Shown piece by piece: positions 11,561 to 57,798 of a stretch of DNA of 64,000 nt; position 1 is the stretch's first letter, and each line of letters begins with the position of its first letter. A program made the position numbers and the translations under genes. The notes beneath the pieces were generated by a model, which was not told the DNA's origin, made no database searches, and saw only the letters and a program-made list of their open reading frames with translations. The DNA comes from Ruditapes philippinarum (Eukaryota). The stretch covers positions 62,001 to 126,000 of the forward strand of contig NW_026866038.1 of NCBI RefSeq assembly GCF_026571515.1, read 5' to 3'.

Positions 11561-11769
11561 ATTAACATTCATCAAGAAATTCGATCCTTTAATTTTGCAT
11601 TACCATAAGATGTATAGTCTTAAATCATAAACAGGTTCATTTTCATGAATAGAATGCTTAATTTCTTATTGTACTTAATTAATTAGTGTTATATTCATGT
11701 ATGTTTAACTTGACCATTGCAGTGCAGTACTCTGTCATTAACATCGCAGTTTCTTAATATGCTGTCATG

Positions 11770-14493: not shown

Positions 14494-16189
14494 TTATTTA
14501 AAGTCGTATTCTTTAATGAAGTTGCGTTCTTTTGATTGACGATGTTCACTGATAAACAATTTCCGCTGATCTTCACAAATTAAAAGAGAACATGGCTCCA
14601 GCACGTTTTGCAAATGGAGATGTCTAAGTTCTCTTGAATCAGGTACAATTACCAAGATCTTGTCACTTCTTTCTGGATCACAAACAGCAACATTTCCGCA
14701 GTTGGTGAATGTTAGGCCATGTGGATATTCCATCTCCTTAGTCTTAATTGTAGTTTTCAGATGCCCTGTCAGTGTAAATTCATGCACGGCATTGTTCTTC
14801 CAGTCAGACATGTACATACTCTCATTATCGTTACTCAGAGATACATATAGTGGCTCAGCCAATATGCTTGTATCACTGACTTGATGAAGAATATAATATA
14901 TCCATGTCTATCACCTGAACAGCAGGACAAAAACCAACAAAAGTTACTGCCATTATACCGTTGTGATGATCTATTCCATAACATCCATGTTTGACTCGCA
15001 GACTGTTACTTACAGACAATCCATTTTGTGTATTTATCAACATGATTTTGCCCTCAGCAGGTAAAGTTGTTGCAGCAGACGAGGAATTTATTGTAGTGAC
15101 GTCAGCTGGCCTACTCGACGTTTTCAATGTTGATGTAATTTTACCCTCTTTATGGTTTAATACTTTTAATGATACATTATAGCTATCTGCGAATAGAATT
15201 TCAGTTTCAGACATGATTGACATTCCCGATATATAACAATCTTTTTTTGCGTTGGTATGTACGTCGATTTTCCTCACAAAACGTGTCTCATTGTCAATGA
15301 TTCTTTTTGTGCATCGTCCCGAGAATTTCTTCACTTGTCTATCAAGATTGCCAAGGCATATGTTATGCATTTTCACATCCTTCAATTCTTTAGCAGGAGT
15401 ATATTTTAAAGTGTTTATTTGACTTTTAGATGAAATTTCCCTATTGATTTCATAGCATCTTCGCAGTTTCTTTAGTATTTGTTTTGATGTAACAAATAAG
15501 TTATTGATATTGTCTTTACACTGTTCTTGTTTATTTTGAAATTGTTCGATTTCATCGTTCAAAGCCTCGCATCGACCCTGAAGCTTTTGCTGTTTAGCGA
15601 TATCGCTTGCACTGATCTTTTCAACTTCTTGTATAAGGTCTATTTCTACCCTGTCAAGATAATTGTTCATCTCTTTACGAAACGTCTTTATTTCCTTCAA
15701 TATTGTTATCTTTATCTCATCGGCTGTTACCAGACTGCATTTTATTTCTTGTTTACAAGAATCCAGGTTTTTCATAAGGTGATCAATACTGTGTTTGAGT
15801 TGAACAAGTTCATCACCGTTGTCATAGTTACAAGACACGTCTGAAACTAGTTGAACCTTGCAGGAAGTATGTTCAAGTACCGTACAATCTCCACACCCAA
15901 CACTATTGTGATCCTGACAATAAATCTTTACTATTTCGGTTTTGTGAACATCACATAGTTCAGTGCACGGATCACTTTGAGAAGACAGGACTGTCAGCAT
16001 TTCATCTTTAGATTTGATCACGTGATTCTTTGTCCCCGCCAACTTCCTGTGTGCCTTTATACAAGATGAACATATAAACTCATTACAGTTTTCACAGTAA
16101 CCCTCTGCTTGTACAATATCACCGTCACCTTTGCATGGCTGACATGATCTTATAATATCTGAAGATCCTTTACGTCCTGAAACTTCCAT
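14494..16189 (-). pseudogene. Intronless B-box / coiled-coil / NHL-like beta-propeller protein (RING-less TRIM-like), one frameshift near 14900
   Basis: B-box1 (CQPC...YCENCNEFICSSCIKAH...H), B-box2 (CDVH...YCQDHNSVGCGDCTVLEHTSC), coiled coil, then propeller blades (ILFADSYN, PADVT, CYGI, PLYVSL, YMSDW, PHGL). ORFs 14873..16189 and 14494..14862 join through ...MD/YYILHQVSDTSILAEPLY with a single indel. May be an intact ~565-aa gene with an assembly error. Confidence 0.85.
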
Positions 16190-20036: not shown

Positions 20037-23000
20037 TTGGTGAAAATGGAGGTACAAAACCCAAAGTTCCACCCCCTGTTACCAGCCCTTTGCTTGTTCC
20101 ACCGGACACACCTAGTCATTTTTCTTTCACTTCTCCAAGCACTCCTGCCATTGTTTCAAAGCCACGAAAGATTCCACCTTTTTCTGGTGATGAACCCTTG
20201 GCTAAGGGTGAGATCTCCTTTTATGAATGGCGTCATGAGGTACGTTGCCTTATGAGAGACTCTTATATTCCTAGACTCCAGATATAACAAGCCATAAGGA
20301 CTTCCCTTAGAGGCACAGAGAGGCGACTTGTAGTTTCTTTGGGTGATTCTGTATCTATTGATTCTATTTTTCAGAAACTTGAGTTTAACTTTGGTGAACC
20401 TGCTCGTCAAGGAAGTACTATGCGGGAATTCTTTAATTGTTCTCAACGTCCAGATGAGTCTGTGACTTTTTTGGTTGTAGGTTAGATATAACCCTTGAAC
20501 AAGCTTTTGAAGGCGGACATATACCCAGATCAGGCCGTAATGAATTACTTTGTGAACGGTTATGGTCAACTAACATTCGTCATAAATTAGACACTGCTGT
20601 AAACTATGACCATTTTCTCCGAGATGTTATTGGCAAACTGAAAAGGAACTTTCTTTAACTAACAATACCAAGGTGAAAGCTCATGCCAATTTACAAACTT
20701 CCACTTTTGATGTTAAGAGTAAAATGGAAGACCTAGAAAAGAGGTTTAATACCAAGATTAGCAACATCCAATCAGCATGTGATAAGAAATTCAATACTAT
20801 TATTGAACGTCTAGACTCTATGTCAACTTCTAACAGAGGAGGGAAATTCTCAAGGCCATCATAATTCCCTGAATAGAATAGTTTGAGATTCAAATATTGC
20901 CCCTATTGTTTTTCATCATGTAAATACTTATGGTCTTATTGATACAGATTCAATGGTTTCAACTGCGTCAAATTCATTTGATCAAGCATTGCCAAATAAG
21001 CCAATATTGTTAAACCTTGCAAATTTTGGCGTCGACCTGAATGTTTCTTTTGCCAATGGTAACCGGTTGAATATTTTTGGCTACATAGAAGTTTCCATTG
21101 CCATTCCGGAGCTCAATATTAAATTGCCAGTTCCAGTTTTAGTGGTACCAGAAATACAGGCATCTGTAACATGTCCTGTTATTCTAGGCACAAACGTTTT
21201 AAGGTACTGCAAAGCAGCTGTCTATAGTCAACCATCCAATGTTATTCCAAGTACATGGGTAATGGCTTTTAATTTTCTTGTCACTGACCAAGTACCTGTG
21301 AGATCAACTAATGATCATCCGGTGCAGATTGCTCCTTTTGAATCTGTTACTGTTCATGGCAATGCTAGAGACCTTATTAATAAACACAATGCTCAGAAAG
21401 TAATCTGTTTGTATAATATGCCATCTCAACCTGTTACTATTCAACCAAGATCTAATTTATGCGTTGTCAATGAAGTCAAGGTCGTTGACAGTGTTGCTTC
21501 TCATTCTTCTTCTTCATCTTCTTCTGAGCCTTCCTCGGACAATTTGTTTGCTGAACTTGGAATCAAAATTGACAAAAGCGCTATTTCGCCGCAACAAATA
21601 TTTAGGCTTCAACAAGTTCTTGGCAAATAGAGTCATGTCTTTTCTAGAGAACCAACTGACATAGGGCATTGCAACTTAGTCCGTCATAAAAATTTTTTAA
21701 ATTACTATAGCCCATTCAAACAACCATATAGAAAAATCCCTCCGGGAATGTATGAAGGGGGCAATCAAGGAAAGCGACAGCACCTTTTCATCAAATATAG
21801 TTTTAGTAAGGAAAAAGGATGGAACTCTTAGATTTTGTTTGGATTTTCGTATGTTAAATTCTCGGACTCGCAAGGATGCATACCAGTTACCTACGTTCGA
21901 AGACCAAGTTGATCTCCTTGTTGGTTCTAGGTTCTACTCTAAGCTTAACCTTCGCTCAGGTTATTGGAATATTGATATGGACGAGGAATCTAAACAGTAT
22001 ACAGGTTTTCCGTCGGTAATCTAGGGTTTTATGAATGTCAACGTATGCAATTCGGACTTGTTAACTCTGGCGCCACTTTTCAGCGTGTTATGGAAAAATC
22101 TTTGGGAGACCTTTTACTTAGAGAATGCTTAATTTTAATTGACGATATTTGATATTTTCTCGTACATTTGAAGATCATTTGAATCGCCTAGAAAATGTAT
22201 TTCGCAGACTTTCATATCATGGCTTAAAACTTAAAGGCTCCAAGTGTGAATTCTTGAAGAAGTCTGTGACATATCTTGGCCATGTAATCTCTGATACAGA
22301 TCCTGAAAAAAGATTAGTGCTATTATGAATTGGCCAATTCCTACCAATTTATCTCAATTTCGCTCTTTTCTCGGAACTGCAGGATTCTATCGCAGATTCA
22401 TCAAAAAGCATTCTAAAATTGCCCATATCCTTTGAATAAGTTACTTGATGGCCATGGCACAACCAAATCTAAATCAAAGATTAAAGGTAAAAAGAGTAAA
22501 TCACCAGGTTCTTGGACATGGAGTGTTGATCAACAATCAGCATTTGATACTCTTAAAGAAAAGCTATCTTCACCTCCTGCCTTAGCTTTTGCAGACTTTT
22601 CCAAACCTTTCATAGTTCATATAGATGCATGTTCTACTGGTCTAGGTGCAGTTTTACTTCAGCAGCAAGATGATGATTCAGAGCGTGTTATAGCTTACGT
22701 TAATCGTAGTTTAAGACCCAGTGAACGGAACTATCCAGCCCACAAGCTTGAGTTCATGGCACTTAAATGGGCTGTAACAATCAAGTACCATAATTATCTA
22801 TATGGCAACAAATTTGCATTCATGACAGACAACAATCCCTTTACTTATGTAATGACTACTGCAAAACTTGATGCGACAAGGCCACAGATGGGTCACTGCT
22901 CTATATTCATATGATTTTGATTTAATTTATAAATCAGGTCATTTAAATGGTGGCTGTGATGGTTTAAGTCGCAAACCTCATATGTTTGCTGATAGCATTA

Positions 23001-23979
23001 AAGCCCTCTGTCTTGATGCGGTTGTTTTTTCTTTAACTTCAGACCGTTTGTAAGGTTCTGAAGCCCCAAGCTTTGAGGATTTTACTATGCCTCCTCATTC
23101 CACTGTTATAACATTTGAACCTGTAAATTGGGCCTTCGAGCAGTCTAAAGACCTAAATATTTCAAAAGTTATTTCTATTTTGCAGTACGGTTCTCCCAAA
23201 AGGGGAGGAATATACCCAAAATGGCAAAATCGTTACTTTGTGATATGTGACGTTTGATTACTTGTATTGAAATAGGTGTTCTCTACTGTACTGCAACAGT
23301 AGATGGTGAGCCCGTCAGACAATTGATTTTGCCTGCTTCTCATCAGACCATTGCCTTTCAAGGTGTCTATGACCAGTTTGGTCATGCAGGGCATGAGAAA
23401 TCTCTTTGGCTTGCTCGACAACGTTTCTATTGGCCAGGGATGGAAGTTGATTTCAAGAGAATGATTAACTTATGCAAGTCTTGTGTCTGTGGGAAAACTC
23501 CTCAAAATTCAGCGGCTGAACTCGTACCCATTCAAACTTCAAGGCCAATGCAACTTGTTTGCATGGACTTTCTCAAGTTAGAGAAGTGCATAAGTGGGTA
23601 CGAGGATGTCTTAGTCATAACAGATCATTTTACTCGTTACGCTAATGCTATCCCCTGCCGAAACCAGAAAGCCACAACCACGGCGCGAGCCTTGTATGAG
23701 CATTTCATCATTCACTATTCCTTCCCAGAGCAGCTTCATTCTGACCAGGGTCGTAATTTCGAGAGCAAGGTGATAAAAGAGCAAGCCAATGTCAGGAAAA
23801 CAGGGACAACACCATTTCACACAATGGGTAATCCATCTGCAGAACGCTTCAATAGAACCCTTAATCGCATGCTACGTACCCTGACAGATGACCACAAAAC
23901 AAGTTGGGCTGATTATGTTCTTCCTCTCTGCCAAGCATACAATGCTACTCCTGAACTGGATTCTCACCCTACTTCTTGA
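20037..23979 (+). pseudogene. Gypsy gag-pol remnants
   Basis: PNMA-like gag (KIPPFSGDEP...FYEWRHEV); protease (LIDTDSMVST, VILGTN); RT (VLVRKKDGTLRFCLDFRMLN, LRSGYW, LIDDI); RNase H (HIDACSTGLGAVL, NYPAHKLEFMALKW, TDNNP); integrase (GHAG...FYWPGM...CKSC, MDF, HSDQGRNFES, AERFNRTL). Confidence 0.92.
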
Positions 23980-28875: not shown

Positions 28876-30235
28876 ACAAGAGGGCCATGATGGCCCTGAG
28901 GTCGCTCACCTGTATATAGGCCCCCGGAGCGGGGCCAGTTTAAACCCCAGGGCTTTTATTTGAACAAACTTGGAACACCCATTAGTAGATGTTTCATGAG
29001 TTTCATAAGTTTTTACTACACACATATAATGAAAAACAATGACCTCCTTATTTCCCCCTCCCCCCACCGACAGGGCCAATTTTAACCCAAGGGTTTTTAT
29101 TTGAACAAACTTGGTAGACACCCATAAGAAGATGTTTCATGCTAAACATCTAAGCTCTAGCTCATTGGGTTTTTTAAAAGAAGATTTTTTTAAGTTTTTA
29201 CTATACACATATAGTTTAAAACAATGACACCCCTGGGGCAGGGCCAGTTTTGACCCCAGGGCTTTTATTTGAACAAAATTTGTAGACACTTACTTGAAGA
29301 CGTTTCATGCTTAATATCTAAACTCTAGCTATTTGGGTTTTTTCAAAGAAGATTTTTAGTTTTTGCTTTACACATATAAGGAAAATCAATGACCCCCGGG
29401 GCGGGGCCAATTTTGACCCCAGGGCTTTTATTTGAACAAACTTTGTAGACACACACTAGAAGATGTTTCATGCTTAATATCTAAACCCTAGCTATTTGGG
29501 TTTTTCAAAGAAGAAATTTTTTTAAGTTTTTGATATACACATATAAGGAAAATCAATGACCCCTGGGGCATGGGCCAATTTTGACCCCAGGGCTTTTATT
29601 TGAACAAACTTGGTAGACACCCATTAGAACATGTTTCATGCTAAATATCTTAGCTCTAGCTCTTTGAGTTCTTTAAAAGAAGATTTTTTAAGTTTTTACT
29701 ATATGCATATAGGGAAAATCAATGACCCCCTAGGGTGGGGCCAATTTTGACCTCAGGGCTTTTATTTGAACAAAATTGGTAGACACCCATAAGTTGTGTC
29801 ATGCTAAACATCTAAGCTCTAGCTCATTGGGTTTTTTAAAAGAAAATCAATGACCCCTGGGGTGGGGCCAATTTTGACCCCAGGGCTTTTATTTGAACAA
29901 ACTTGGTAGACACTCACTAGAAGATGTTTCATGCCAAATATCTAAGCTCTAGCTCTTTGGGTTTTTTTAAAAGAATATATTTAAAGTTTTTTCTTTCGGT
30001 TGCCATGTCAACCAGAGTTCTGCATTGAATTAAATTCTTTGAACAGTTTTTAAAGGTGACCACCAAAGGAACATTCCTGTGAAGTTTGGATGAAATTGGC
30101 TTAGTGGTTTATGAGGAGATGTCATTTAAAGTAAAAGTTTACGGACGGACGGACGGACGCCGGACGGACGGACGGACGCCGGACGAAAAGCGATCACAAA
30201 AGCTCACCCTGTCACTTTGTGACAGGTGAGCTAAA
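28876..30235 (+). mobile_element. Non-autonomous pearl/Helentron (HINE)-like element with an internal ~165-bp satellite array
   Basis: Starts ACAAGAGGGCCATGATGGCCC. About 7 core repeats (GGGGCCAATTTTGACCCCAGGGCTTTTATTTGAACAAAC). (GGAC)n microsatellite at 30141-30185. Terminal palindrome AGCTCACCCTGTCAC-TTT-GTGACAGGTGAGCT followed by an A run. The empty site is visible at about 40775-40790. Confidence 0.85.
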
Positions 30236-34270: not shown

Positions 34271-34427
34271 CTCTATCACACACACTTGTGCATGCGCACG
34301 CGGTCGCCTACGGCCTTCGTGGTCAATTCCTACGCATCAAAACTCCAAACCGGTGTTAAATAGCCGATATACATTTCTCAGGCCGATGTTAGTTCTTAAT
34401 TATATTTTTCTTCAAGTGTTTTCCGCG

Positions 34428-34490
34428 TATAAATATTTAACAACGTTAGCTTCATTTTAACTTTGACTTTCAACAGCAAGGAAGGAAAAG
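34428..34490 (+). promoter_or_regulatory. TATA box, Inr-like TCATT and non-coding exon 1 of gene A
   Basis: TATAAAT at 34428, TCATTT at 34452, donor AAG|GTGAGT at 34490/34491. Conserved with 45834..45896. Confidence 0.75.
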
Positions 34491-34834
34491 GTGAGTATGT
34501 TATATTATTACTTAATGTGTAGATTATATACAAGATATTTGTTAGTTTTTTTTTTTAAAGTTACCTTAAAAAAGAAGAAAAAAGAACTAAAAAACTGAAA
34601 ATGTTTTATTTAGTTTTTAGCGCTGGTGAATTTAGAATTCGTATAAGATATGGTTCACATTCTTTATAAACAAGCACATTTGTATTTTGTGGAAATATAA
34701 TTGTTATTAATGAAAATCATTAATCTCTGAATGATATTTTATTATTGAAAAGATATTATTTTTGTTTATCGCTAGATTATGCCAATCACACTGTTTTCCA
34801 AAACTTTATTTTATCTTGTTGGTTTCCAGCGAAA

Positions 34835-36061
34835 ATGATGACGTCATCAAATGTGCACGTTGTATTGCTTGCCACGGCAACGCTTGTAAGTTTTGCTTGT
34901 GCTGTAGAGAATTCCACCCAAAAGCAGATAGGTGTTTTAAAAAACACATATTTCAACCATGTGTCCATTTTCTACACTGAAGTTTGAAAAATATCTTTTA
35001 CTTAACCATTTGTTGCTGTTAACTTTTCAATTATTTGTTGTTTTTGATCTTTAAAATATTTGTTCGATGTAAGTGTTATGTGAAAACTAAACAATATTTT
35101 TACAATAAATATAACGAACAACCAAGTAGGGATTCTTTATCTATTTACTGACTCAAACGTCTAAGGCCGCTCAAGGAAAATTATGTTACGGTTATGAGGT
35201 CCAATCCTTTATTGCAAGGTCTATAAACTCAGTTCAAAATCTTGCCATCGAGGTTAATATGTTTTGCCCAACAAATGTAACTCCACAAAAGTTGGAAGCA
35301 AAGTTTACGACGTTCGTATGTATCACATCACATATGTTCTAGAACATGGATTGTTGATAACGTTATCTTAAATTCGATAAAAACCAACATTAGCCGTTCT
35401 AAAATAACACCCAACGCAACACATAAGTCTCAAAAGGCGTAGTTAATGTTGCTGATATGCTGAAGGAATTGAAAAAGTTTACATTTGTTTCTTGTCTTTC
35501 TTGAAGGGATTTAGCGATAGCCTCACGAAAACACAAGACAGACTCGAAAAGTTTAATCCTTTTGACCGTTTCAAAAAATGGCCTTTCCGTAACTTTCGCA
35601 ATGAGGATGGAGGCGGAGGTGATTTTCATTACCACAAAGTTAAAGGAGATGGGACGGTTCGTAACTATCGCGTGGAGGACGGAGGTCTAGGGGACAGATA
35701 CTATCACGAGGTCGACGCAGATGGGAACGTTCGTAACTACCATGTCGAAGACGGAGGTCAGGGTGACCGAATGTACCACGAATTCGAGGCAGATGGGAAC
35801 GTTAGAAACTACAATGTCGAAGACGGAGGTCAGGGTGACATGACTTTTCATGAAGTCGACGAATATGGTAACGTTCGTAACTACTATGTTGAAGACGGAG
35901 GTGAAGGTGACAGATGCTACCACGAAGTCGAAGGTGACGGGAGTCCATTTCGTGGTAATTATTATTACAACTATGTACATGGAGGTAGACACCGTTTCTT
36001 TCACAGCGAGAGCAGCTCCTCCGAGTCTATGGATTGGGATGATTTTCTTTTCGACTTGTAA
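34835..36061 (+). CDS. Secreted acidic 24-aa-repeat protein A (5 repeats), unrecognised family
   Basis: Exon 2 from ATG 34835 encodes a hydrophobic leader. Exon 3 (35507..36061, acceptor TTTCTTGAAG) encodes GFSDSLTKTQ..., 5 x (VRNYxVEDGGxGDxxYHEVDxDGN) and ...SESSSSESMDWDDFLFDL*. The donor equivalent to gene B's is AT rather than GT at 34928; an in-frame GTAAGT at 34886 is the alternative. Confidence 0.8.
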
Positions 36062-36519
36062 GCAATTTGTTCACTGTGGGGTATTTTGGCGTCGTTGTGG
36101 CCTTTTTTATTCTGATATTTGCACGGTTGCATTTCTGTTAACTAGTCGGATCTTTTATTACATTTGTTTTTACATTTACATATCCTGATATCGGGTATCG
36201 AAATTAAACTCATCGCCATAAATTCACTGGCAAAAGTATTAAAAAACCCTACCATTTGAGAAATATATTCAACAATATTCATCAAGAAATTCGATTTAAT
36301 TTCGCATTACCATAAAATGTATAGTCTTAAATCATAACATAATGACAATATTTATTTTTTTATCAGGTTCCCTTTCATAAATAGAATGCTTGATTCTTAT
36401 TGAACATAATGAATTAGTAACATATTCATGTATATATAACTTGACCTAGTTAAAAAGCATTGCACTGAGTTACAATCTGTATTATGTCATTAACATCGCG
36501 GTTTCACAATATGCTGTAA

Positions 36520-37075
36520 TGTTTGACCATCACACGATTGAATCACAGTCTGTCACCTTTCAGGATCACACCATAGTATTTTCGCATCATTGTGATTTCA
36601 TCTTCGCACGGTCGCACATAGTGTTTCGCTATAGCACGATCGCACCTAAGTATTTCACCATTGCATGGTGCCATCATTGTTTTTCACCATCGCATGTTGC
36701 CATCATAGTATTTCACCATCGCATGAAGGCTCACAGTGTTTTACCATCGCATGGACGCACCTTAGTATTTCACTATCGCATGACCGCATCATAGTGTTTC
36801 ACTATTGCACGACCTTATAGTGTTTCATTATCGCACAACCGCATGATAGTGTTTCACTATCTCACGACCGCATCATAATGTTTCATGATCACATCAAATT
36901 GTTTCCCCATCGTACGATGGCGTTTCGCTAACATGCAATCGTGTTTTGACCATCGCTTTCATTATCTTGTACTCCTACTATTGTGTTTCCATTATCGCAG
37001 CATTTTGAATCGTGAGTTAGGTAAATTTAAGCAAAATAAAAAGCCACGATTTATATCGTAACAGAACTCCATACT
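36520..37075. repeat. ~29-bp minisatellite, unit 2 copy
   Basis: Same motif as 11770..12240. Confidence 0.85.
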
Positions 37076-38105
37076 AGCTTCGCCCCATCCTATTCTGAAT
37101 ACATATTTGTATAGAGAAGTTTTTGTAAATTGTACGAGTAAGCTTTCGATAAACATTATGCTAATCCTACTTTCAGATTTGATTCATTGTTCTGAAATCG
37201 AGCATACTGGAGAAACGAAAGCGGCAGAAAAACTATTCAGTCTACTTGTAGAAACTGTTATTCTGATTAAAAAATTAAAGACACTTCATTATGAATTTTT
37301 TCCCTTTTTTGTTATTCTATTGGTTTATACGATCGGAGGAGTAAACAACTGGTCAATATCGCCACACTTAAATTATTTGAAAATATGAGCTGTCGTCCCT
37401 TTGTCATCAACCAAGCACCGACTTAGCAATATTTGAATTTCACTATATAATTAAGTATTAGAAAAAGATATAACAAAATCTAAAATGCGTCCGTACCAAA
37501 CATGACATATAGTCTAAATCGTGCTAAATTGAGACATGTATATAGTTACATGTACATTCATTTTCTTTTAGAAATATTTACTTCAGAAATAACTTATTAT
37601 CTTTCATTAAGAAAAAAATCTGCAAACACAGTTATCCCTCGGAAACTTTAATCACAACAAAATTACATGAAAATTGCAGACTCGAGCGGTACTCAATTCT
37701 CAACACTTAATAGTGATAGCAGCAATGATCCCGAAGGAAGAAGTCGCAATGTCATCTCTTGTTCGATCGTTAGATAAATCTTTATAAGAATATATAGTCA
37801 TCAGACAACTTTGATGGTGCTCATAGGTCTCTTGTTCAGTTGTCATTAAATACATTCATAAGACAAAATTACTATGGAATGAAATAATTTGAAATAGGGC
37901 ATTGCACTAGCAATGAAAATTCATATGCAAAACAAATCTTTTTAAACAAACACAAAATTACCATGCAGGCGTTATCATTTAAAACATGTCTATAAACATA
38001 ATAAGAAAAGGGCACGTTAGCTTAACTGTTTACCACGCTAAATATCTTAAACCGATTTTTCAGTTCATTATTTTATGTGTATGTATTTGAGTTTATCTGT
38101 GATCC

Positions 38106-38350
38106 AGAAGAGTATAAGTCATTTTATATTTTGGAGGATAGTGTAATATACAGATACAGATATATGCCCCGATTCCAGAAGCTTCTCCTGGTCCTTTAAC
38201 GTGCAGAGTGTTAACGCACTAATACACGGGACCTCGATTTAAAGTCTCATTAGAAAGACTGATTAGTAATTTTAGTTGGCCAGCCCGGGAATCGAACCCA
38301 CAATGTCGAGATTACAAGTATTGCACTATAACCGACTGATTTATACGGGC
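38106..38350 (-). mobile_element. tRNA-derived SINE (V-SINE-like), unit 2 copy
   Basis: Minus strand A-box-like TCAGTCGGTTATAG and B-box GGTTCGATTCC, followed by GATGAGACTTTAAATCGAGGTCCC-like sequence. Confidence 0.75.
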
Positions 38351-39296
38351 AGCGGTTTAAGTGAACTTTTCAAAAATATTTATCAACTGATAAGCGAACA
38401 TTGAAGACCATATGACACGTGCGGATAGATTCCATTTTCACCAGCAGGTTGAAGGTTTATTAACACTATCAAAGTCGTTTAAAATAATGGACATTTTCTA
38501 GCTAATGTCTAAACTTGAAAAACAATTGAGGCAATGATTTATTATTAAAGTTCTTTTTGTACATGTTGAAAACTTGCGACGTTTCAGAATCTTAGAAAGA
38601 GTTTAACCATACTACTTTACTAGGAAATCCCTTATTTTTTTTTTCATTGGTTTATTTCAGTTCGTACTATAAAGTTTGATATCATGACTTAAACGTAAGA
38701 TGGTTCAGGAAAACTTAGATTAGTGTTTCCTGTTCTGTATTTATTTTTATTTGTTGAAGTATTTCCTAGTAAAAAACATTATACTTTTAAAATTATGATT
38801 CATAATTATATTCATAATATTCATACATGAATAGGACAAGTTTGTTAAATTAACAAGGAAAAGGGTCATTTAATTGGTAGCAATAATCAAAACATACAAT
38901 CTTGTCATATACAAAAATAATCTTATAAACACTGTTTTGTAACAAAAAGTCATATTTCAACGTTTATATAAAGACATGTATAAACGCTGAAATGCGATTT
39001 TTTTAAACAGCGTATATTATAAGTTTATATATGTGATAAATTAATGTGCTTGGACTGACAAAATGTTAGAAACAATTCATTTGGATTTTTCTACGTTTGA
39101 AGCTCAGCAAAGTAAATGTTTGTGGTCCTGATCAAGACTGAAACAATAGTTGCTGACCATGAAGTGGTTCAAGCCCACTTCCGCTATGTTATACATCAAA
39201 ATCACAAACCGACCTCTGTTTAAACCTCTTAATAATCAATCTTTGAATAAACGCTTTATGTTTAAAGTGATTGGTTTCCTTACATTATAAAATACA

Positions 39297-44870: not shown

Positions 44871-45833
44871 TTTGACGTATTCCTGAAATCAAGTATATTT
44901 AACTACAGATGAACATATCCAATTTATTATTTAAGTGTTTTTAGTAATAAGGAAGATATAAAAGTGCAGTAACAGTACTGACATTTTGATCTGTTAAGAT
45001 TGCACTTTAAATAAAGTGTTCTTGGTAACTGGGCAAACGTAACCTTTTTTAGCTCATCGGAGCTCTTCGAAAAGTAATTGCGTCCATCAATCACAAGGAG
45101 CATGTTGTATGTGAGATATTTACATCGAGACCATGTTTTCAGCGCAATGATAACTATATTGTCCAATTTTCCTGATAGCTGTTTTGACAAAAAATAAAAT
45201 ATGTATGTCGCCTACGACAATCATTAAGAAAACCAAGTCAAATCATCCGACTCAAAGTAAGAACATAATTCCACAGAATGCGCACCATATTACTTTTAAT
45301 ATCCAATTTCATGACGTCGATTATAACTGACGTCTGTATATGATAATTGCTTTGTGTATAAAACAATTTTCAAATTATTATAGAAGTAACAAAACTTGAC
45401 CCTTTGTATAAATCAGTTAATATACTTTCCCCGTAGTAGGGTACTGCAAGTTAAGAATAATCAGTTCTAAGGAACACTTGGTTGAACTGTTCAGTTTAAA
45501 AACAATAGTATGCAAGAGACAGTCACAAACTAGATCAAACAACAGCAATAAGAACCTAAAGGTAATAGCTTTCTATTTATCTCCAAGATTAATTCGATAT
45601 TTGGTTTAAAAATGATTAAAAACGAAATAAAATAAATAAAAATAATTGTTATAAAAGCAAATACAAACAAAATTATAAAAAACGAAAAGAAAAACATCAC
45701 CTGGTTAGGGTCTTAGGTCTTAGTCTTAGGGTGAGCGTCCCCGTGTCATTATTCACTTCTTGTTGTTTGTTTTGTTTTGGTTTCATTCCAAGAAGAAATA
45801 TTGCATCATACTTTTCTTCAAGTGTTTTCCCTG

Positions 45834-45896
45834 TATAAATAGTTTACAACGTTAGCTTCATTTTAACTTTGCTTTTCAACAGCAAGGAAGGAAAAG
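45834..45896 (+). promoter_or_regulatory. TATA box, Inr-like motif and non-coding exon 1 of gene B
   Basis: TATAAAT at 45834, TCATTT at 45858, donor AAG|GTGAGT at 45896/45897. Confidence 0.75.
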
Positions 45897-46244
45897 GTGA
45901 GTATTTAATATTTTTAATGATTGTGTAGATTATATACGAGATATTTGTTAGTTTTGTAAAAGTTACCTTAAAAAGAAGAAAAAAGAAATTGAAAAAAATG
46001 AAAATGTTTAATATAGTTTTCTAGCGCTAGTGAATCTAGAAATCATAAGCGATATACATGTATTTCACATTCGTGATCTACAAGCACACTTTCATTTTTA
46101 GAAAATAATTGTTATTTAATGTAAATCATAAATCTCTGAATGATATTTTATTATTGATTAAGTTATTATTTTTACATTATCACTAGATTATGTATATATC
46201 CCAATTTTCCATTAATCTTATCCTGTTGATTTCCAGCGAGAAAG

Positions 46245-47564
46245 ATGGCGTCATCAAATGTGCTTGTTATGTTGCTTGCCATGGCAACGCTTGTGAATTT
46301 TACTTGTGCTGTAGAGAATTCAACCCAAAAACAGGTAGGTGTTTTAAAAAATGTTTCAACCATGAGTTCTTTTTCTTCACTGAAGTTTGGAGAATATCTT
46401 TTACTTTTACCATTTGTTGCTTTTAATTTCAAATATTTGTTATTTTTTATGTTTAAAATATTTGTTTGATGTTGGTGTAATTTGAAAACTAAATAATATT
46501 TTTGCAATAAATACGAACAACTAACAGACAAGTAACACTTCTGTATCTATCTACTGACATAACTATATCTTTTAACGGCTTAAGCCGATCATGAAAAATT
46601 ATGTAACGCGTACGAGTGTTCCAACCCATCTTTGCAAGGTCTTTAATCTCAGTTCAAGTTCTGGCCACCGAAGTACATATGTTTGCCCAACAAATGTCTC
46701 TTTTCAAAAGTTAGAAGCAAAATTTTCAAACTTCGTATGTATAACATTACATATGTTCTAGAAAACTGATTGTAATAACGTTTACATGAATTCGGTAAAA
46801 ACCAACATCAGCCGATCTAAAATAACACCCAATACCATACAAAGGTCTCAAAAAGCGTCAATGGTGTTGCTGGTGTTACAACGGTTAATGTTGAAGAAAT
46901 TGCTAAAGTTTAGATTTGTTTCTTATCTTTCTTAAAGGGAATCACCGACAGTCTCACGAAAACACAAGACAGACTCGAAAAGTTTAATCCTTTTGACCGT
47001 TTCAAAAAATGGCCTTTCCGTAACTTTCACAATGAGGATGGAGGCGGAGGTGATTTTCATTACCACAAAGTTAAAGGAGATGGGACGGTTCGTAACTATC
47101 GCGTTGAGGACGGAGGTCTTGGGGACAGATTCTACCACGAAGTAGATGGAGATGGGAACATTCGAAACTATGGTGTTGAGGACGGAGGTGAAGGTGACAT
47201 ATATTACCACGAAATCGATGAAGATGGGACTGTTCGTAACTACCATGTCGAAGACGGAGGTCAGGGTGACAGAGTGTACCAAGAAGTCGACGCAGATGGG
47301 AACGTTAGAAACTACAAGGTCGAAGACGGAGGCCAGGGTGACATGACATTTCATGAAGTCGACGAATATGGGAACGTTCGTAACTACCATGTTGAAGACG
47401 GAGGTGAAGGTGACAGGTACTACCACGAAGTCGAAGGTGACGGGAGTCCATTTCGTAGAAATTATTATTACAACAATGTACATGGAGGTAGAAACCGTTT
47501 CTATGACAGTGAAAGCAGCTCCTCCGAGTCTATGGATTGGGATGATTTTCTATTCGACTTGTAA
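46245..47564 (+). CDS. Secreted acidic 24-aa-repeat protein B (6 repeats, 238 aa), unrecognised family
   Basis: join(46245..46334, 46938..47564), phase-0 GT-AG intron. MASSNVLVMLLAMATLVNFTCAVENSTQKQ|GITDSLTKTQDRLEKFNPFDRFKKWP, then 6 repeats, then PFRRNYYYNNVHGGRNRFYDSESSSSESMDWDDFLFDL*. Confidence 0.9.
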
Positions 47565-48009
47565 GCAAATTATTTACTGAGGGGTTACCTTTATCGCGTC
47601 GTTGTGATCTTTTTGATTTTGATATGTGTACAAGTTGCATTTCTGTAGAATAGTCAGATCTTATATAACATTTGTTTTTATATTTGCATATCCTGACATC
47701 TGATTAAGGAATTAAAACTGTCGCCAAAAGTATAAAAAAAATCTTACAATTTGAGCAATATATTCCACAATATTCATCAAGAAATTCGATTTGGTTATTT
47801 TGCACTACCATCAGTAGAATAGCCTTAAATATTAAAATAACAACTATAATAATTTATTAACGGGTTCATTTCCATGTATAGAATGCCAATTTTCTTATTG
47901 AACTTAATTTATAAGTGGCATATGCACGTATATGACTTGAATTGTTTAAAACCTTTTGCATTGTTTGACAATCTGTATTATGTCATCAACATCGCGATTC
48001 CACAATTAT

Positions 48010-48350
48010 GCTGTCATGTTTCAGCATTACAGGATTGAACCAAAGTGTTTCACTTTCGCAGGGTGCCATCATAGTATTTCACCATCGAATGTTGCCATCA
48101 TAGTGTTTCACTATCACACGATCGCATCATAGTATTTCACGATCGCATCAAATCACGATTGCATCATAGCGTTCCACTATCGCAGGATCGCATCATAGTA
48201 TATCACTATCATGCAATCGTGTTTTAATCCTTGTTCCGAAGTGTTTTCATCATCGTGTTATCCTGCTATTGTGTTTCCATCATCGCAGCATTTTGAATCG
48301 TGTGTTATGCAAATTAAAAAAGCAACGATTGTCGTAACAGAACACTGTAC
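48010..48350. repeat. ~29-bp minisatellite, unit 3 copy
   Basis: Same motif as 11770..12240. Confidence 0.85.
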
Positions 48351-49334
48351 TCGCTACGCTCCATCCTTTTCTTATAAGTGTATAACGATAACATTATTTG
48401 TGGTAAATTGTAAGCTTTTGATAACCATTATGCTTTTCTTACTTTCAGATTTGATTCATTATTCTAAAATCGAGCATTTCGGAGTGAAGAAAGCCAGGAA
48501 GATTATTCAGTTTGCTTGTAGAAACTTTTATTCTGATTAAAAAGTTAAATACACTCTTATAATTCTTTTATTGTTATTCAAGTAGTTTATACCATCAGAG
48601 TTATGATCGGAGCAGTAAACAAATGGTTAATGTCGCCACACTTCAATCATTCGAAAGTATACTCTTTCCTCTGCCTCAACCAAGCACCGATTTGGCACTA
48701 TTTGAAATTCTTTATAATTAAGGATTTTGAACATTGATGACAATACTGACAATCTAAAATGCATTTTTACCAAACAAGACATAAATCGTGCTAAATTAAG
48801 ACATATAGTTACATTCATTTTTTTAATATTATCTTTAGATAAAACTTATTATCTTTCATTAAAAAGTCGCAATGTCATCTCTTGTTCGATCATTAGATAT
48901 ATAAATAAGACAGAGTGGCATTTATAGGCTTCCATACTTTATCCTTTATAATAATAGATTGACAATTATATAATTTATTTGGATTTCAAGTCGTTCGGAG
49001 TTCTACTACACCCCAAGTGTCTATAGTCCTGACCAGACAGAAGACTACAAAGTGGTATACATTAGTTTCAATCTTTTACCATAATCGAGATGAAATATAC
49101 AGTTTTAAAGCAAAAACATGAATAATTTCTGACTACATGACAAGCTTTTATCCATGATGGTTATTTCCTTTGAGCATCGCTCTGAGTTGTAGTGGGATGA
49201 GGGAAAGAAAAGTGTACATCCTTAAATAGCGTTAGCTTAACTCTTACCACGCTTAATTTTCAATACATTCTTTTTATGTGTATGTATTTGAGTATATCTA
49301 TGATCCCCACCGATTGTCCAGATATGCGAGTCCT

Positions 49335-49588
49335 TCAAAAGAGTATTAGTAATTTTATATTACAATTATATAGTACAAGATACAGATACAGGAAGATGCC
49401 AAAATTCCAGAAGCTTTCTCTGGTTCTTTAGCGTGCCAAGTGTTAAAGCACTTATACAAAGGGGCTCGATTTTAAGTCTCATCCGAAAGACTGATTAGTT
49501 ACTTTTAGTTGGTTGGTCAGTCCGGGAATCGAACGCTCAATGTTGAAATTACATGCCTCGCACTCTAACCGTGTGAGCTATGCGGGCA
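49335..49588 (-). mobile_element. tRNA-derived SINE (V-SINE-like), unit 3 copy
   Basis: Minus strand GTTCGATTCCCGG B-box and CTTTCGGATGAGACTTAAA. Equivalent to the other two copies. Confidence 0.7.
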
Positions 49589-50779
49589 GAATTTTTAGTG
49601 AAACTTTCAAAAATAAGTATTAACTGAAAAGCGAACAGTGAAGACCATGTGACACGTGCGGGTAGATTCAATTTCCGCCAGCAGAAAGTTAATCAACACT
49701 AACAAAGTCGTTATTAACAATTGTCATTTTCTTGCTTATGTCAAAATTTGAAAACTTATTGAGGCAATGATTCATTATTAAAGTTCATTTTGTACATGTT
49801 CAAAACTTACGACGTAACAGAATCTTAGAAAAGTGTAACTAAACTATTTTAGTTTACTAGGAAATCCTTTGGTGTTTTTTCATAGGTTTATTTCAATTAC
49901 TATAAAACATATTATTATGACTTAAACCTAAGAGGTTTAAGGAAAAGTGATGTAAGTTTTTCCTGTAATATAAGTTATAACAATTTATTCAAGTGTTTCC
50001 TAGTAGATAACTACAATAATACATTATTATACTCTTAATTATTTTTATTATACATACATTGTATATACATAAACCGGATAAGTTTTCTTAATCAACAAGG
50101 AAAAAGGTCGTTTTATTGGTAGCTAAGTTTAATAATATTTTATTGCCTAATAGTATATAGATATACATTAATTCACTTATATCAACAAAATTACACAATA
50201 TACAAAAGGGTTGGGCCAAAAGCTATATGTATTTAATATAATATTCAGTAGATCTAATGTGGTTACGATATATTTGGTAGATACAATACACCATATGATA
50301 ATCTAAGAGAAGTGATGATTCTAAACTATATTATAAACTACAATTACCATATTGCTATCCAAATTGCACAAAAAAGGAAAGTATCCAAATTGCTTACATG
50401 CCAGTATATGAAAGAATATGTCCATTTTTGTAAAAAGTGCATTAAGACAGAAATGCATATTTATTACAATGCCCTCTCTTTATATTAAAATACGTAATAT
50501 CATCTATTGTGAGAAAGCTTAATCTGTAGATGATGGTTTTTTATGAGATGCCTGGAAATGACATGTTTGTAGACATGTTCTATCCCAAAGACATGCAAAA
50601 TCCTGCTGTGATGAATTAAAACTGAGAAATAATACTTGTAGTATCATTTAGAAGGTCCCCACCCCGATATTTTGCTCCAAGATAAAAGAAATGGCAGGGC
50701 GGGATCCTCGGATCCTTAAGATTTGTCCTTTGGGGTTCCGCTCAAGCGTAAAAAGGGGAGATAAACGTAAACATTTGTT

Positions 50780-51277
50780 CAAAAACTATTGGCATCAAAA
50801 GTTCCTTAAAGTTTGCAAGTGCGCAAAAATCAGTCAAAGACCAACGAAATGGACTCTGAAGTGTCCTTATATGTAAATAATATCATTTTCACCATTGGCA
50901 CCAAACTTCCTGAAAAGTCTACGATTTCCCCAGAATCAGTCGCAGACAAACCAATGGATTCTGGAGGGTCCCTATATGTCAAAAATGTCATTATCTCAAT
51001 TGGTACCAAAATTCCTGAAAGTCAGCGAATGTCCCAAAATCAGTCGCAGACCAATCCAATAGACTCTGGAGGCTCCCTAGATGCCAAAAATTTTATCATC
51101 TCAATTGGAACCAAAAGTTTCTGAAAGTCTTCGACTATCCCAGAATCAGTTGCAACCAACGAAAAGGACTTTTAAGGGATACTAGAACAAAAAATAGATT
51201 TTAAATCAATTGGCACCAAAATTCCTTGAAGTCTTCAACGATGTTAGAAACAGTAGCAGACCAGTGAAATAGATCCT
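50780..51277. repeat. Degenerate 105-bp tandem repeat (~5 copies)
   Basis: ATTGG(C/T/A)ACCAAAA-like motif at about 50788, 50894, 50999, 51104 and 51209. Confidence 0.85.
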
Positions 51278-52190
51278 GGTATAATAGTTTGGATGAACTT
51301 TAACAATACATCGTTCAGAGTTATCCGTCGCATGGTATAACAGTTTGAATGTACTTTAACAATACATCATTAAGAGTTGTCCGTCGCAACGTATAAAAGT
51401 TTGAATGTACTTTAACAATACATCGTTTGGAGTTATCTGTCGCAAGGTATAAAAATTTGAATGTACTTTAAAAAAACATCGTTTGAAGTTATATGTCGCA
51501 AGGTATAAAAGTTTGAATATACTTTAACAATACATCGTTTGGAGTTATCTGTCGCACGGTATAAAAGTTTGATTGTACTTTAACAATACTACGTTTGAAG
51601 TTATCTGTCGCACGGTATAAAAGTTTGAATGTACTTTAACAATACATCGTTTGGAGTTATCTTTCGCACAGTATAATAGTTTGAATGTACTTTTACAATA
51701 CATCGTTTGGAGTAATCTGTCGCACGGTATAATAGTTTGAATGTACTTTTACAATACATCGTTTGGAGTAATCTGTCGCACGGTATAAAAGTTTGAATGT
51801 ACTTTAACAATACATCGTTTGGAGTTATCTGTCGCACGGTATAAAAGTTTGAATGTACTTTAACAATACATCGTTTGGAGTTATCTTTCGCACGGTATAA
51901 AAGTTTGGATGTACTTTAACAATACATCGTTTGGAGTTATCTGTCGCAAGGAATAAAAGTTTGAATGTACTTTAACAATACATCGTTCAGAGTTATCTGT
52001 CGCAAGGAATAAAAGTTTGGATGTACTTTAACAATACATCGTTCAGAGTTGTCTGTCGCAAGGTATAAAAGTTTGGATGTTCTTTTACACCTGTCACACG
52101 GTGTAAACGTTTGGATGTTCTTTTACAATATATGGTTAAGAGTTATCTGTCACACTGTATAAAAGTTTGGATGTACTTAAACTATACATT
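51278..52190. repeat. 56-bp minisatellite (~16 copies)
   Basis: Unit GTATAAAAGTTTGAATGTACTTTAACAATACATCGTTTGGAGTTATCTGTCGCACG. Confidence 0.95.
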
Positions 52191-53569: not shown

Positions 53570-54686
53570 ATGAAGTTAACAACTTTGATTGCAGTCGGCG
53601 TTCTTGTGGCAATGTTTGCAAGCGTCTCTTGGGCAGATTCCTCGTCCTCGGAAGAGGTAAGCATAATTATGTCTTATCAATCTTTTTATTCTATATAAAC
53701 AAGTATAGGATTTTTGAATTAGAAAAAAAAACTAGAAAAGAAACAAATAATTTGTTTGTTTGATTGGTGTTTACGCAAATTTTATATGGTCATATCTCGG
53801 AAAGCGATTCACTTAAAGGGTTTTCCCGGATAATTGACCAGTAATTAACAATTGCTTCTTATGTGACCGGCTACTTATCCCACATGGTTTTTGAATCAGC
53901 TGTGAGAGACAAGTGTCTGTGGAAAACATTCGTCTCTATCGAGGACCCCTTGATTAAAAGAAAGTTTTATGTTGTCCGTATTGAGCTTAGAGAGATAAAA
54001 AGAACAAATAAACACGCACAAAACATAACATAACAACGTTTAATACAAGTTCGTGATCTTAACTGTGGTCGCCAACAACAAGTCACTAAACGTTAAAATT
54101 TCACCAGGAATGCTTGAGTTTGACATCTGAGGAATATATACACCAAATATCGATGATTTTTCACAGGATATTTATGGTAAAACTTGAAAAAAGAAGGAAT
54201 TATAATTTATACATAAACAATAAACTTGTTGCGTTTACCTCAACAAATAACGAAATAAATGATGGATCTAATAGATCTAATATAATACATTTAAGTATAT
54301 ACCGTGGATACTCATAGGCAAGAATGGTTACGCATTATTTTTCTTAAGAAAAAACTACATGCTAAAACCAATAATGCAATAAGATTAAACTCAATACATG
54401 TTGTAGTTCATTTTTTATATCATTATTAAACATCTTGATTTCATTTTTAAAACAGAGGGATCGCTATTACGAAGGCTATGGGCGAGGTTATCCCTCAGAG
54501 AACATCCAACAGGGTGGCCGTTACTTTGGCGACAGAGACCTTGACCGTCGCCACCACTTCCATCGTAATCCTTTTCGAGAGGACCGTCACTACTACAATG
54601 TGCACGGAGGGAGACCTAGATACGTGAATAGGGACAGCAGCGATTCAGCATCTATTGACTGGGATGAGTTTCTCATAGCTTTGTAA
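53570..54686 (+). CDS. Small secreted R/Y/G/H-rich protein C, candidate phosphoprotein (105 aa), repeat-less paralogue of A/B
   Basis: join(53570..53656, 54456..54686), phase-0 GTAAGC...AACAG intron. MKLTTLIAVGVLVAMFASVSWADSSSSEE|RDRYYEGYGRGYPSENIQQGGRYFGDRDLDRRHHFHRNPFREDRHYYNVHGGRPRYVNRDSSDSASIDWDEFLIAL*. The last 38 aa align without gaps to the A/B tail. Confidence 0.88.
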
Positions 54687-55335: not shown

Positions 55336-55539
55336 ATTTATGAAGTATGAAGAAGTGAAATAGTTTTTAAATCATCATCTGTGGCAAGATCAACACAACT
55401 CTATGAACAGGCTCAATCAAAGAGCCTGCAACATGTTCAATTTTGTCGTTTTGAGCGTTCTTTGGGGATTCCGTTTTTCTCTGTTTTACACCTGGTCAAC
55501 ATAGTTTAAATATTGTCAAACAGTACTCTTATATCAGTA

Positions 55540-56178
55540 TTCGTTCAGATAAGCATTTAGGTTTTGGGAAAACTGCCAAATGTGTTGAAAAAATTCGTTC
55601 AGATGAGCATTTAGGTTTTGGGAAAACTGCCAAATGTGTTGAAAAAAATCGTTCAGATAATCATTTAGGTTTTGGGAAAACTGCCAAATGTGTTGAAAAA
55701 ATTCGTTCAGATGAGCATTTAGGTTTTGGGAAAACTGCCAAATGTGTTGAAAAAAATTCGTTCAGAGAAGCATTTAGGTTTTGGGAAAACTGCCAAATGT
55801 ATTGAAAAAATTCGTTCAGATGAGCATTTAGGTTTGGGAAAACTGCCCAAATGTGTTGAAAAAATTCGTTCAGATAAGCATTTAGGTTTTGGGAAAACTG
55901 CCAAATGTGTTGAAAAAATTCGTTCAGATGAGCATTTAGGTTTTGGGAAAACTGCCAAATGTGTTGAAAAAATTCGTTCAGATAAGCATTTAGGTTTTGG
56001 GAAAACTGCCAAATGTGTTGAAAAAATTCGTTCAGATGAGCATTTAGGTTTTGGGAAACTGCCAAATGTGTTGAAAAAATTCGTTCAGATAAGCATTTAG
56101 GTTTTGGGAAAACTGCCAAATGTGTTGAAAAAATTCGTTCAGATGAGCATTTAGGTTTTGGGAAAACTGCCAAATGTT
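55540..56178. repeat. 54-bp minisatellite (~12 copies) with dimeric alternation
   Basis: Unit TTCGTTCAGAT(A/G)AGCATTTAGGTTTTGGGAAAACTGCCAAATGTGTTGAAAAAA. Confidence 0.95.
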
Positions 56179-57798
56179 TTGCACAAAGTGCACAAAGATA
56201 ATAGGCCAAATCGTGCTGTCGTAAAAATTGGTTTAACCTTAAAAGGCATTCCCTCGAGACATTCTGACTCCGCTATCAAAAATCATAGAGCGCAACCAAA
56301 TTAATGAATATTGTAGGTAAAAACTTGATAATACATGTTTGTAAATGCAAAAAATGGAATAAATTCAAAAAATAATTTTTTTAAATTATGTGAAAATTTA
56401 CAAAAATTTTTATAAATTAAAAAATTTTAAAGGTATTAATAAAAGGAAAATCAAGTGTCAATCATATGGGGTTAAAAGTCTATTTGGAAAGGGGGATTTT
56501 AAAGCAAGTTTTAAAAGAAAAGGGTTTTAAAAAAAATCATAAAATTTTTTTCTAAAAACAAAAAAAAATAAAAAAATCCCTAAAAAAAAACAAACACAAA
56601 ATTAAAATGTTGCAGGTTTGGGGTTACTGGGCCCGTTTTGGGGGGTAGAAAGTGAGTTTCGTCAAAGCTCAAAACGGGTTAAAAGGATTCAAAAACAAAA
56701 TTTTGAAAACCCGTAAATTTTTACGATTTTTGCCGCAAGGGGGACTAATTAAAAAGGGGGCCCTTTCGTAAAAATGGGATAATTACTGGTTAGTTAATCA
56801 GAAAACCGGTAATGTGGACCAACCGCTGAGATTTGACCAAAAAATGTATTAAAATCGCTATAAAAACAGGAAAAAAAGAATTAACAAAAATAAAAATCTT
56901 ATTTCTTTTCAGGTTAAATGACCTATTTTAGAAGAAACAGAAAGAAGAGGTGCTCTCCAATGAGTGTCGGGATATGTAACAATAATCCAAACTGACAACA
57001 TGATTTTCTAACTGACAACACTATTTTTCAACTGACAACATTATTTTCAACGTTACAACATGTTTTAAAATAAACTATTTTACAATTTCAAAGTCAATAA
57101 AATATTTAAATCCTAAAATCTAGTTATTTAATATAGGAAAATACGCTATACGACGTAATCCTATCCTATGCAAACCACCTGCGAAATTAAATAGATGATA
57201 TCATAATCATGCACAAGGACCGAAGCCAGGACATGTCATCTGGAAAAGGACTTTGTTTAAAACCCAAAACGATAAACGATACTCCTCCCTAAAAGGGTGT
57301 TGTTTTACAAACGTTTACTTATCCAGGCAAGTTGCTTATAATAACTATCACATGTAACAGAAAATAGTAATCTGGGGTCTCCAAGATATTCGCACACTTT
57401 GGACATTTGACCTTGAATGTTAAGGTAATTTATGGATGAAGGCCAAGGTAAGTCTGGTCTACTAAAAGGCCTTGTCCCACAAATATGATCAAGGTAACGT
57501 GGACGGCAACGGCAACGCCGACATGACTGTAACAAAACCTCTATTTATTTATTTATTATTAAAGGTCAAGCTAAAAATGACCCAAAATTGAAAAGCGTTG
57601 CAACGTTTTTAAATCCAATCGGACTAAGAATAGCACATAAAAAATTTCTTCAGTTCATTTTTTGTAATATTTCTTAATTATCTTTTGCGTATCTTTCTAG
57701 CAGATCTACGAAAGTAATTTATATTTTGATATAGGCTTTGGACCTCAGAGGTGCTTTAAATACAGTTACTGTAAAAAAACGATGTTATGATAAATCAC

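Follow-up and report, generated by a model that had tools for sequence, protein, structure and literature searches.

A conserved 24-residue tandem repeat in exon 2 of LOC132731081, a spliced gene of the clam Ruditapes philippinarum, and its possible relation to calcium binding

To which gene does the in-frame 72-nucleotide (nt) periodicity on contig NW_026866038.1 of Ruditapes philippinarum belong, and what might a clam protein built of 24-residue units do? The window, i.e., the whole stretch of 64,000 nt analysed here (NCBI RefSeq assembly GCF_026571515.1, positions 62,001 to 126,000 of the forward strand of the contig), contains at 46938-47564 (window coordinates, used throughout) an open frame in which a preliminary description, made from the sequence alone, had noted an unrecognised tandem repeat of 24 amino acids (aa). 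The tandem repeat is confirmed. It belongs to LOC132731081 (in the following gene B), which has three exons, 46938-47560 being the second; the product XP_060573173.1 ("uncharacterized protein", 243 aa) is 100 % identical to the translated stretch. Gene B comprises the following parts:

46245..46334, forward strand: coding part of exon 1, 30 codons (MASSNVLVMLLAMATLVNFTCAVENSTQKQ), matched at 100 % by tblastn of the gene B protein
46335..46937, forward strand: intron 1, 603 nt, GT..AG; joint 46332->46936 in RNA contig X1, to which a cut at +2 fits equally
46938..47560, forward strand: exon 2, coding for 26 N-terminal residues, the six units of 24 aa, a seventh, degenerate one and a Ser/acidic tail
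47016..47447, forward strand: repeat array R0-R5, six in-frame units of 72 nt/24 aa
47448..47560, forward strand: degenerate seventh unit PFRRNYYYNNVHGGRNRFY and tail DSESSSSESMDWDDFLFD(L), the tail being common to gene C (see below)
47561..48448, forward strand: intron 2, 888 nt, GT..AG; joint 47560->48449 in RNA contigs X1 and X2 and in one raw read of run X23
48449..48530, forward strand: exon 3, completing the Leu codon, followed by FDSLF, the stop codon (48465-48467) and the 3' untranslated region

The translation of exon 2 is 100 % identical to the gene B protein (P0001), and that of the spliced exons equals it. The degenerate seventh unit, located in the tail after R5, can also be written RRNYYYNNVHGGRNRFY.

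This exon structure is borne out by RNA. In total, 24 sequencing runs were listed for the stretch, 19 of which (8 studies) contain it; four are recorded as RNA, and four runs were aligned to 45900-50700. A 788-nt contig of RNA run X1 aligns to 46235-46332, 46936-47560 and 48449-48495, thereby joining exon 1 to exon 2 and reaching into exon 3, and a 708-nt contig of RNA run X2 aligns to 46936-47560 and 48449-48530. The parts skipped are 603 and 888 nt long and bounded by GT..AG. Since a contig devoid of both introns cannot derive from genomic DNA, gene B is transcribed and spliced on the forward strand; the transcript on which the preliminary description had made its functional model depend is thus present. 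Splicing also shifts the end of the interval as originally drawn: the exon is real, but it stops at 47560 with a GT donor, and the in-frame stop codon at 47562-47564 is spliced out and unused, the mRNA continuing at 48449 and the product ending in ...FDLFDSLF. Over 46936-47560 both contigs depart from the window at the same single position (47190 G>C, Glu->Gln), an allelic change at the free position 11 of unit R2, which is counted in favour of the reading preferred below. Expression of gene B is not general, as the two RNA runs of 2026 inspected as raw reads (X21 and X23; about 4-6% of each read) have near-zero depth on exon 2, with one X23 read spanning the second joint. An antisense open reading frame (ORF) of 183 aa (46932-47483, reverse strand) traverses the repeat. 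It was rejected as a gene and is regarded as a by-product of the codon make-up of the repeat, because both introns are GT..AG on the forward strand and the RNA contigs follow that strand too.

Exon 1 codes for MASSN followed by a hydrophobic core of 12 residues, a putative signal peptide as read from this hydrophobic stretch, with which the protein would be secreted. The mature protein is free of Cys and very acidic (isoelectric point about 4.5; grand average of hydropathy, GRAVY, -1.3), consisting of Gly to 14.5%, Asp 13.6%, Glu 9.1%, Tyr 7.7%, His 4.5% and Lys 3.6%, with Gly, Asp and Glu together accounting for 37%. Within the repeat block (144 residues), 37 Asp and Glu stand against 13 Lys and Arg, resulting in a net charge of about -24.

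Tandem Repeats Finder detected the 72-nt period at 47061-47445 in gene B (5.3 copies, 75% matches, score 313) and at 35647-35931 in a paralogue, gene A, located 11.4 kb upstream (4.0 copies, 78% matches, score 321). With the register cut from 47016 in B and from 35585 in A, six and five units are obtained, respectively, each of exactly 72 nt, in frame and without indels, as had been noted at the outset. The unit has the consensus VRNYxVEDGGxGDxxYHEVDxDGN, from which the first unit of each gene diverges most (FRNF.NEDGGGGDFHYHKVKGDGT). Across the 11 units of both genes, nine of the 24 positions are invariant (R2, N3, E7, D8, G9, G10, G12, D13 and G23), and further ones are nearly so, i.e., V/I/F1, Y/F4, V6 (9/11), Y/F16, H17 (10/11), E/K18 (E in 9/11), V19 (9/11) and D22 (9/11), the pair Y16-H17 being kept in 9 to 10 of the 11 units; positions 5, 11, 14, 15 and 21 are free. 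The seven-residue turn EDGGxGD contains six of the nine invariant positions, a degree of conservation that exceeds what turn geometry alone would need. Of the residues initially listed as retained, RN(Y/F), EDGGxGD and Y/F16-H17-E/K18 hold, whereas the strict DxDG turn of the initial consensus is restricted to three of six B units and one of five A units. That the repeat ORF arose by chance is contradicted by its length (208 open codons in a region of 33-35% GC) together with its transcription and splicing and with purifying selection on both copies.

The relatives of gene B within the window are the following:

34838..34927, forward strand: exon 1 of gene A (MTSSNVHVVLLATATLVSFACAVENSTQKQ), 80% identical by tblastn to residues 1-30 of the gene B protein
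35507..36057, forward strand: exon 2 of gene A, with five units at 35585-35944, its end placed by analogy with the donor site of gene B
53570..54686, forward strand: gene C (LOC132731087), 110 aa, three exons laid out as in gene B, one degenerate unit and the shared tail

Gene A is a predicted gene with an intact leader exon and an exon 2 that is open for 184 codons. Its protein was absent from a word search of 5.8 billion proteins, which returned solely the gene B product, and gene A may be unannotated in the public annotation. The gene C protein (P0008) is 42% identical to that of gene B over 72 aa (E 2e-14), a match covering one degenerate unit and the tail; gene C is without a repeat array, and the same word search returned no relative of it other than gene C itself. 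The tail shared by B and C reads …NVHGGRxRY…S-rich…DWDxFL…LF, that of gene C ending in …DWDEFLIALLNDLF. Judged from these alignments, the family consists of three tandem genes, A, B and C, with 5, 6 and about 1 unit, respectively. In the clam's own genome the unit was found in A and B only, by protein as well as DNA search. Four protein matches on another contig (C9297) were rejected, since they represent a 26-nt satellite translated across 4-7 stops in each case.

The proposal that the protein is under selection while third codon positions vary agrees with the substitution data. Among the units of gene B, the proportion of nonsynonymous differences (pN, 0.11-0.36) is lower than that of synonymous ones (pS, 0.31-0.88) in 15 out of 15 pairs, i.e., the variation is at third codon positions and the encoded protein is retained; with pS this high, often beyond Jukes-Cantor correction, the units are old, and their protein sequence is conserved. 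Between exon 2 of A and of B (the latter without R2), synonymous divergence (dS) amounts to 0.185 and nonsynonymous divergence (dN) to 0.040 (dN/dS 0.22); intron 1 is 83% identical, and the duplicated block (about 34399-38881 vs 45805-50123) 75-82% identical outside the exons. Each unit of A has its counterpart in B (A0-B0, A1-B1, A2-B3, A3-B4, A4-B5; 89-99% nt identity), the extra unit in B being R2 (47160-47231), removal of which gives the best A/B nt identity (93.7%). This pairing implies that the array is older than the gene duplication and that both copies have been constrained since; all told, the divergence pattern indicates units that are far older than the duplication and kept by purifying selection. 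The window contains three arrays of a 29-nt satellite with a unit like TCGCATCATAGTGTTTCACTATCGCACGA (11768-12053, 36582-36885 and 48033-48211), two of these arrays lying within the duplicated block just 3' of exon 2 of A and B, and the one at 48033-48211 in intron 2 of gene B.

No accepted homologue outside the species was found in Pfam, NCBIfam, PDB sequences, protein word and profile searches or metagenome contigs, in keeping with the initial impression of an unrecognised repeat family; nor did any of these searches yield a strong match to a characterised family, which would have removed the novelty. Restriction to the species here means within the libraries searched, the clam's own genome being the eukaryote genome covered. 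In Pfam, both exon products and nine double units of 48 aa gave nothing above chance at E up to 10; the sole row, PknH_C (E 0.0055-0.21), is below cut-off and was read as chance. NCBIfam likewise gave nothing above chance, its sole row, PetP, having 17 bits vs a cut-off of 65. PDB sequences were not matched by the single protein or the profile (best E 0.53), and the word search of 5.8 billion proteins, which covers proteins of 0.55-1.75x query length, returned for the gene B protein only itself.

The nine double units were furthermore used as a profile against 1.84 billion representatives of any length, with seven proteins at E <= 0.001, one of which is the gene B protein itself. Two others, P0002 (89 aa) and P0005 (77 aa), are "hypothetical" JGI/IMG proteins; each is known from a single metagenome contig of 1,576 nt, and the two contigs are presumably identical. 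In P0002, residues that are invariant elsewhere are changed, and the sequence continues into what in A is the 3' flank, while P0005 starts in the +1 frame of the repeat. With these changes, the frame shift and the loss of the tail, the two together have the appearance of a further, degraded copy of the repeat gene that reached a metagenome with clam DNA. As this copy was not found in this assembly, it would stem from another individual or a close relative. P0003, a bacterial surface protein of 5,137 aa whose units contain DUF11/DUF7619, carries the 20-residue motif VFDELDTDGIIRNFKITDGT 15 times (residues about 1700-1719 and 14 more places; in total 99.7 bits, E 6e-24). The motif aligns to profile positions 15-34 and resembles clam YHEVDxDGNVRNYxVEDGG (with the preceding free position, xYHEVDxDGNVRNYxVEDGG) strikingly, but it appears a single time in each unit of about 300 residues rather than as a 24-aa tandem and lies outside the Pfam-matched part, adjoining DUF11/DUF7619. 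Its E-value is inflated by 15 near-identical copies (about 6.6 bits each by our arithmetic). P0003 was rejected as a homologue and read as convergence on a hairpin turn. The remaining three (P0004, P0006 and P0007) are bacterial proteins with Gly/Asp/Arg-rich repeats of their own and were rejected as compositional. In metagenome contigs, a scan with the unit pattern gave 592 stretches, none of which was confirmed, and seven contigs from a second scan (55-65% GC, one match each, best tblastn E 0.19) were rejected as chance. Searching the ESM Atlas by features, performed twice, gave no usable match. In the literature, no paper carrying the LOC/XP identifiers of gene B or the repeat motifs was found; one match to the motifs was an unrelated psychology paper. 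A shell-matrix proteome of the Manila clam is said to have been published by Marie et al. in 2011.

For the fold, the exon 2 product was modelled with AlphaFold2 with A as the sole other alignment row, yielding a mean predicted local distance difference test (pLDDT) score of 52.3 (60-65 in the repeat block) and a predicted template modelling score (pTM) of 0.40, with strands at 51-60, 63-69, 75-84, 87-93 and so on. Each unit is predicted as a hairpin composed of the strand VRNYxVEDGG, a 2-residue turn xG, the strand DxxYHEV and a 5-residue loop DxDGN. A four-unit fragment with shifted units as alignment shows the same pattern without a rise in confidence (mean pLDDT 47.6). The ESM Atlas model of the gene B protein (pLDDT 0.59) has as neighbours unnamed bacterial hairpin-repeat proteins (template modelling score, TM, 0.80-0.82 over the repeat block), LESV (0.66) and MORN (0.59). 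With Foldseek, nothing in PDB matched at E <= 0.001; beta-propeller lectins, Rhs shells and OspA variants ranked best (Rhs/OspA best E 0.025-0.1). VIA-align against 48,161 chains ranked Tom40 first (Z 10.5, root-mean-square deviation, rmsd, 4.8, 178 aligned), with porins and TonB-dependent receptors next; the Rhs shell 8qjc reached Z 8.0 (rmsd 3.9, 109 aligned). The regular antiparallel sheet envisaged in the preliminary description therefore survives as a weakly supported prediction, a beta-hairpin meander on which two predictors and the other methods are consistent, with no residue at pLDDT 70. If the register of this low-confidence model is right, Y4, V6, position 15, H17 and V19 would lie on one face and charged residues on the other; such a sheet may need a partner or curl.

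How does the repeat compare with known systems? RTX beta-rolls lack Cys, are rich in Gly and Asp and fold extracellularly on Ca2+, and the clam protein resembles them in being Cys-free, with Gly/Asp-rich tandem units, a conserved Gly-Gly-x-Gly-Asp turn and a probably extracellular location, so that folding on Ca2+ common to both is plausible by analogy. It differs in its period (24 rather than 9), in the Asp being placed one position earlier (GGxGD; the RTX consensus, Pfam HemolysinCabind, is GGxGxDxUx) and in the predicted fold, which is an antiparallel hairpin meander instead of a parallel beta-roll. MORN repeats (PF02493) share units of about 23-24 residues, each a hairpin, and an elongated antiparallel sheet (TM 0.44-0.59 with the Atlas model, model to model), but the clam repeat has no PF02493 match and its conserved positions differ; MORN proteins are, moreover, intracellular and not acidic. 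Rhs/YD and single-layer sheets such as OspA likewise consist of hairpin repeats with a turn of the aromatic-x-Asp-x-x-Gly type and appeared in both fold searches, whereas the clam repeat has no PF05593 or NCBIfam YD-repeat match and no instance of the YxYDxxG core. Mollusc mantle secretomes contain a large share of lineage- or species-specific secreted repeat proteins without known relatives (PMC5400390), against which background another such orphan from a clam is expected, not surprising. With the repetitive low-complexity domain (RLCD) proteins named there (shematrins, KRMPs) the clam protein shares restriction to the species, probable secretion, a tandem repeat without other domain, and a small tandem gene cluster with gain or loss of units (A 5, B 6, C about 1); gene B has the tandem repeat domain without similarity to known proteins by which this type is described. 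It differs in the length of its unit (24 aa), which is not of low complexity, predates the gene duplication and shows residue-specific conservation. Less usual are this long unit without indels, its age far beyond that of the duplication, and a residue-by-residue conservation peaking in the acidic, Gly-rich turn.

We tentatively favour, while giving it somewhat less than an even chance, a clam-restricted, Cys-free, secreted hairpin-repeat protein that would work in an extracellular matrix or in contact with mineral, its invariant EDGGxGD turns serving as Ca2+ sites. Each unit would form a beta-hairpin from the strand VRNYxVEDGG, the tight xG turn, the strand DxxYHEV and the loop DxDGN, and with one hairpin per unit the array would become an antiparallel meander. 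The invariant E-D-G-G-x-G-D turns would then be aligned along one edge of the sheet, roughly one per 1 nm, and Ca2+ could be held by the three carboxylates and the Gly backbone carbonyls of each turn. The ion would stabilise the fold as it does in the Cys-free RTX beta-roll outside the cell, a functional analogy and not family membership, and the regular acidic edge would bind Ca2+, CaCO3 or a matrix surface in the shell matrix, the extrapallial fluid or another secretion. The conserved Ser-rich, acidic and hydrophobic tail, which gene C has as well, may serve for docking or be phosphorylated. A bolder form of this proposal would make the EDGGxGD unit an undescribed Ca2+-binding repeat, i.e., a 24-residue antiparallel counterpart of RTX that folds only on Ca2+, presents a row of ions about 1 nm apart and arose in the venerid lineage by amplification of a single unit like that of gene C; this we consider improbable.

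Several results weigh against Ca2+ binding in such a setting. The likeness to RTX nonapeptides and DxDxDG loops suggested in the preliminary description could not be upheld, since the RTX pattern GGxGxDx(hydrophobic)x, the 12-residue, PROSITE-like EF-hand loop pattern and DxDxDG each have no match in A and B and the period is 24, not 9; a relaxed pattern, D.D.[DNST]x6E, occurs in three of six B units and one of five A units. No Ca-binding Pfam family, HemolysinCabind and EF-hand included, was matched by the exon products or double units at E up to 10. Acidic residues are not kept throughout in the second loop (position 20: D6/E3/K2; position 22: D9/Y2). No residue reaches pLDDT 70 in either AlphaFold2 model (means 52.3 and 47.6), which leaves room for a largely disordered acidic protein, and the fold matches are to generic up-and-down sheets (porin walls, Rhs shells, OspA) with Z in the range of common arrangements for the tool. 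Finally, the near-zero depth in the two 2026 RNA runs provides no tie to mantle or shell.

The low model confidence throughout (AlphaFold2; Atlas 0.59), the hydropathy of -1.3 and the 37% of Gly, Asp and Glu in the absence of Cys would all be in accord with an acidic, intrinsically disordered matrix protein of the repetitive low-complexity kind known from molluscs, in which the predicted hairpins are an artefact and composition and charge spacing are what matters; lineage-specific secreted repeat proteins are common in mantle secretomes (PMC5400390). Nine positions are nevertheless invariant among units with near-saturated synonymous sites, R2 and N3 included, with an alternating hydrophobic pattern, a residue-specific constraint atypical of repeats maintained for composition only, and the 24-residue period without indels points in the same direction. 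We regard this explanation as unlikely.

The conserved Y/F4, V6, Y/F16, H17 and V19, the MORN, LESV and bacterial hairpin-repeat neighbours of the Atlas model and the Rhs shells of both fold searches suggest another function, namely ligand recognition by a hairpin-repeat module comparable to MORN, choline/cell-wall-binding or YD repeats. The acidic turns would then be structural only, and a Tyr/His/Val ladder on one face would bind protein, glycan or lipid, e.g., as part of humoral immunity or of mucus; lineage-specific secreted recognition proteins are abundant in clam genomes. Conservation is strongest, however, in the acidic Gly-rich turn and not at the aromatic positions, MORN, RHS_repeat and CW_binding gave no sequence match at E up to 10, and a net charge of about -24 per 144 residues is unusual for modules of this sort; recognition is considered improbable. 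The contents of Tyr (7.7%), His (4.5%) and Gly (14.5%) and the Y16-H17 pair would also suit a structural protein of periostracum, ligament or byssus that is cross-linked via Tyr and His, either by 3,4-dihydroxyphenylalanine (DOPA) or by metal, a possibility raised in the preliminary description. DOPA proteins are mostly basic, whereas the clam protein is strongly acidic and poor in Lys (3.6%), and no similarity to named adhesive or periostracal proteins emerged from the word and profile searches; such cross-linking is judged very unlikely.

Further features were noted in the window. Tandem arrays between or after genes A, B and C were detected at 29071-29844 (168-nt x4.7), 50828-51233 (105-nt x3), 51278-52089 (56-nt x14.5, 92% matches) and 55539-56181 (54-nt x11.9, 95% matches); a 182-aa ORF at 55661-56209 (reverse strand) is the 54-nt array read through. 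Retrotransposon remains on the forward strand comprise an ORF for a Pao-type peptidase A17 (2076-6573, E 2e-50) and ORFs for RT-RNase H and integrase (H2C2, rve; 20953-23979). On the reverse strand, 14873-16189 contains an open frame of 438 aa that starts with a B-box zinc finger (E 1e-8); TRIM-like frames of this sort are common among bivalves.

If the EDGGxGD turn does not bind Ca2+, the protein would be one more lineage-specific secreted repeat protein of molluscs, a class that is already large, and the gain would mainly lie in the annotation of LOC132731081, the possibly unannotated paralogue A and LOC132731087. If it does, the repeat would constitute a new compact, Cys-free, calcium-dependent scaffold that could be relevant for biomineralisation and protein design, and the family would provide a clean case of a structured repeat born and amplified in one bivalve lineage.

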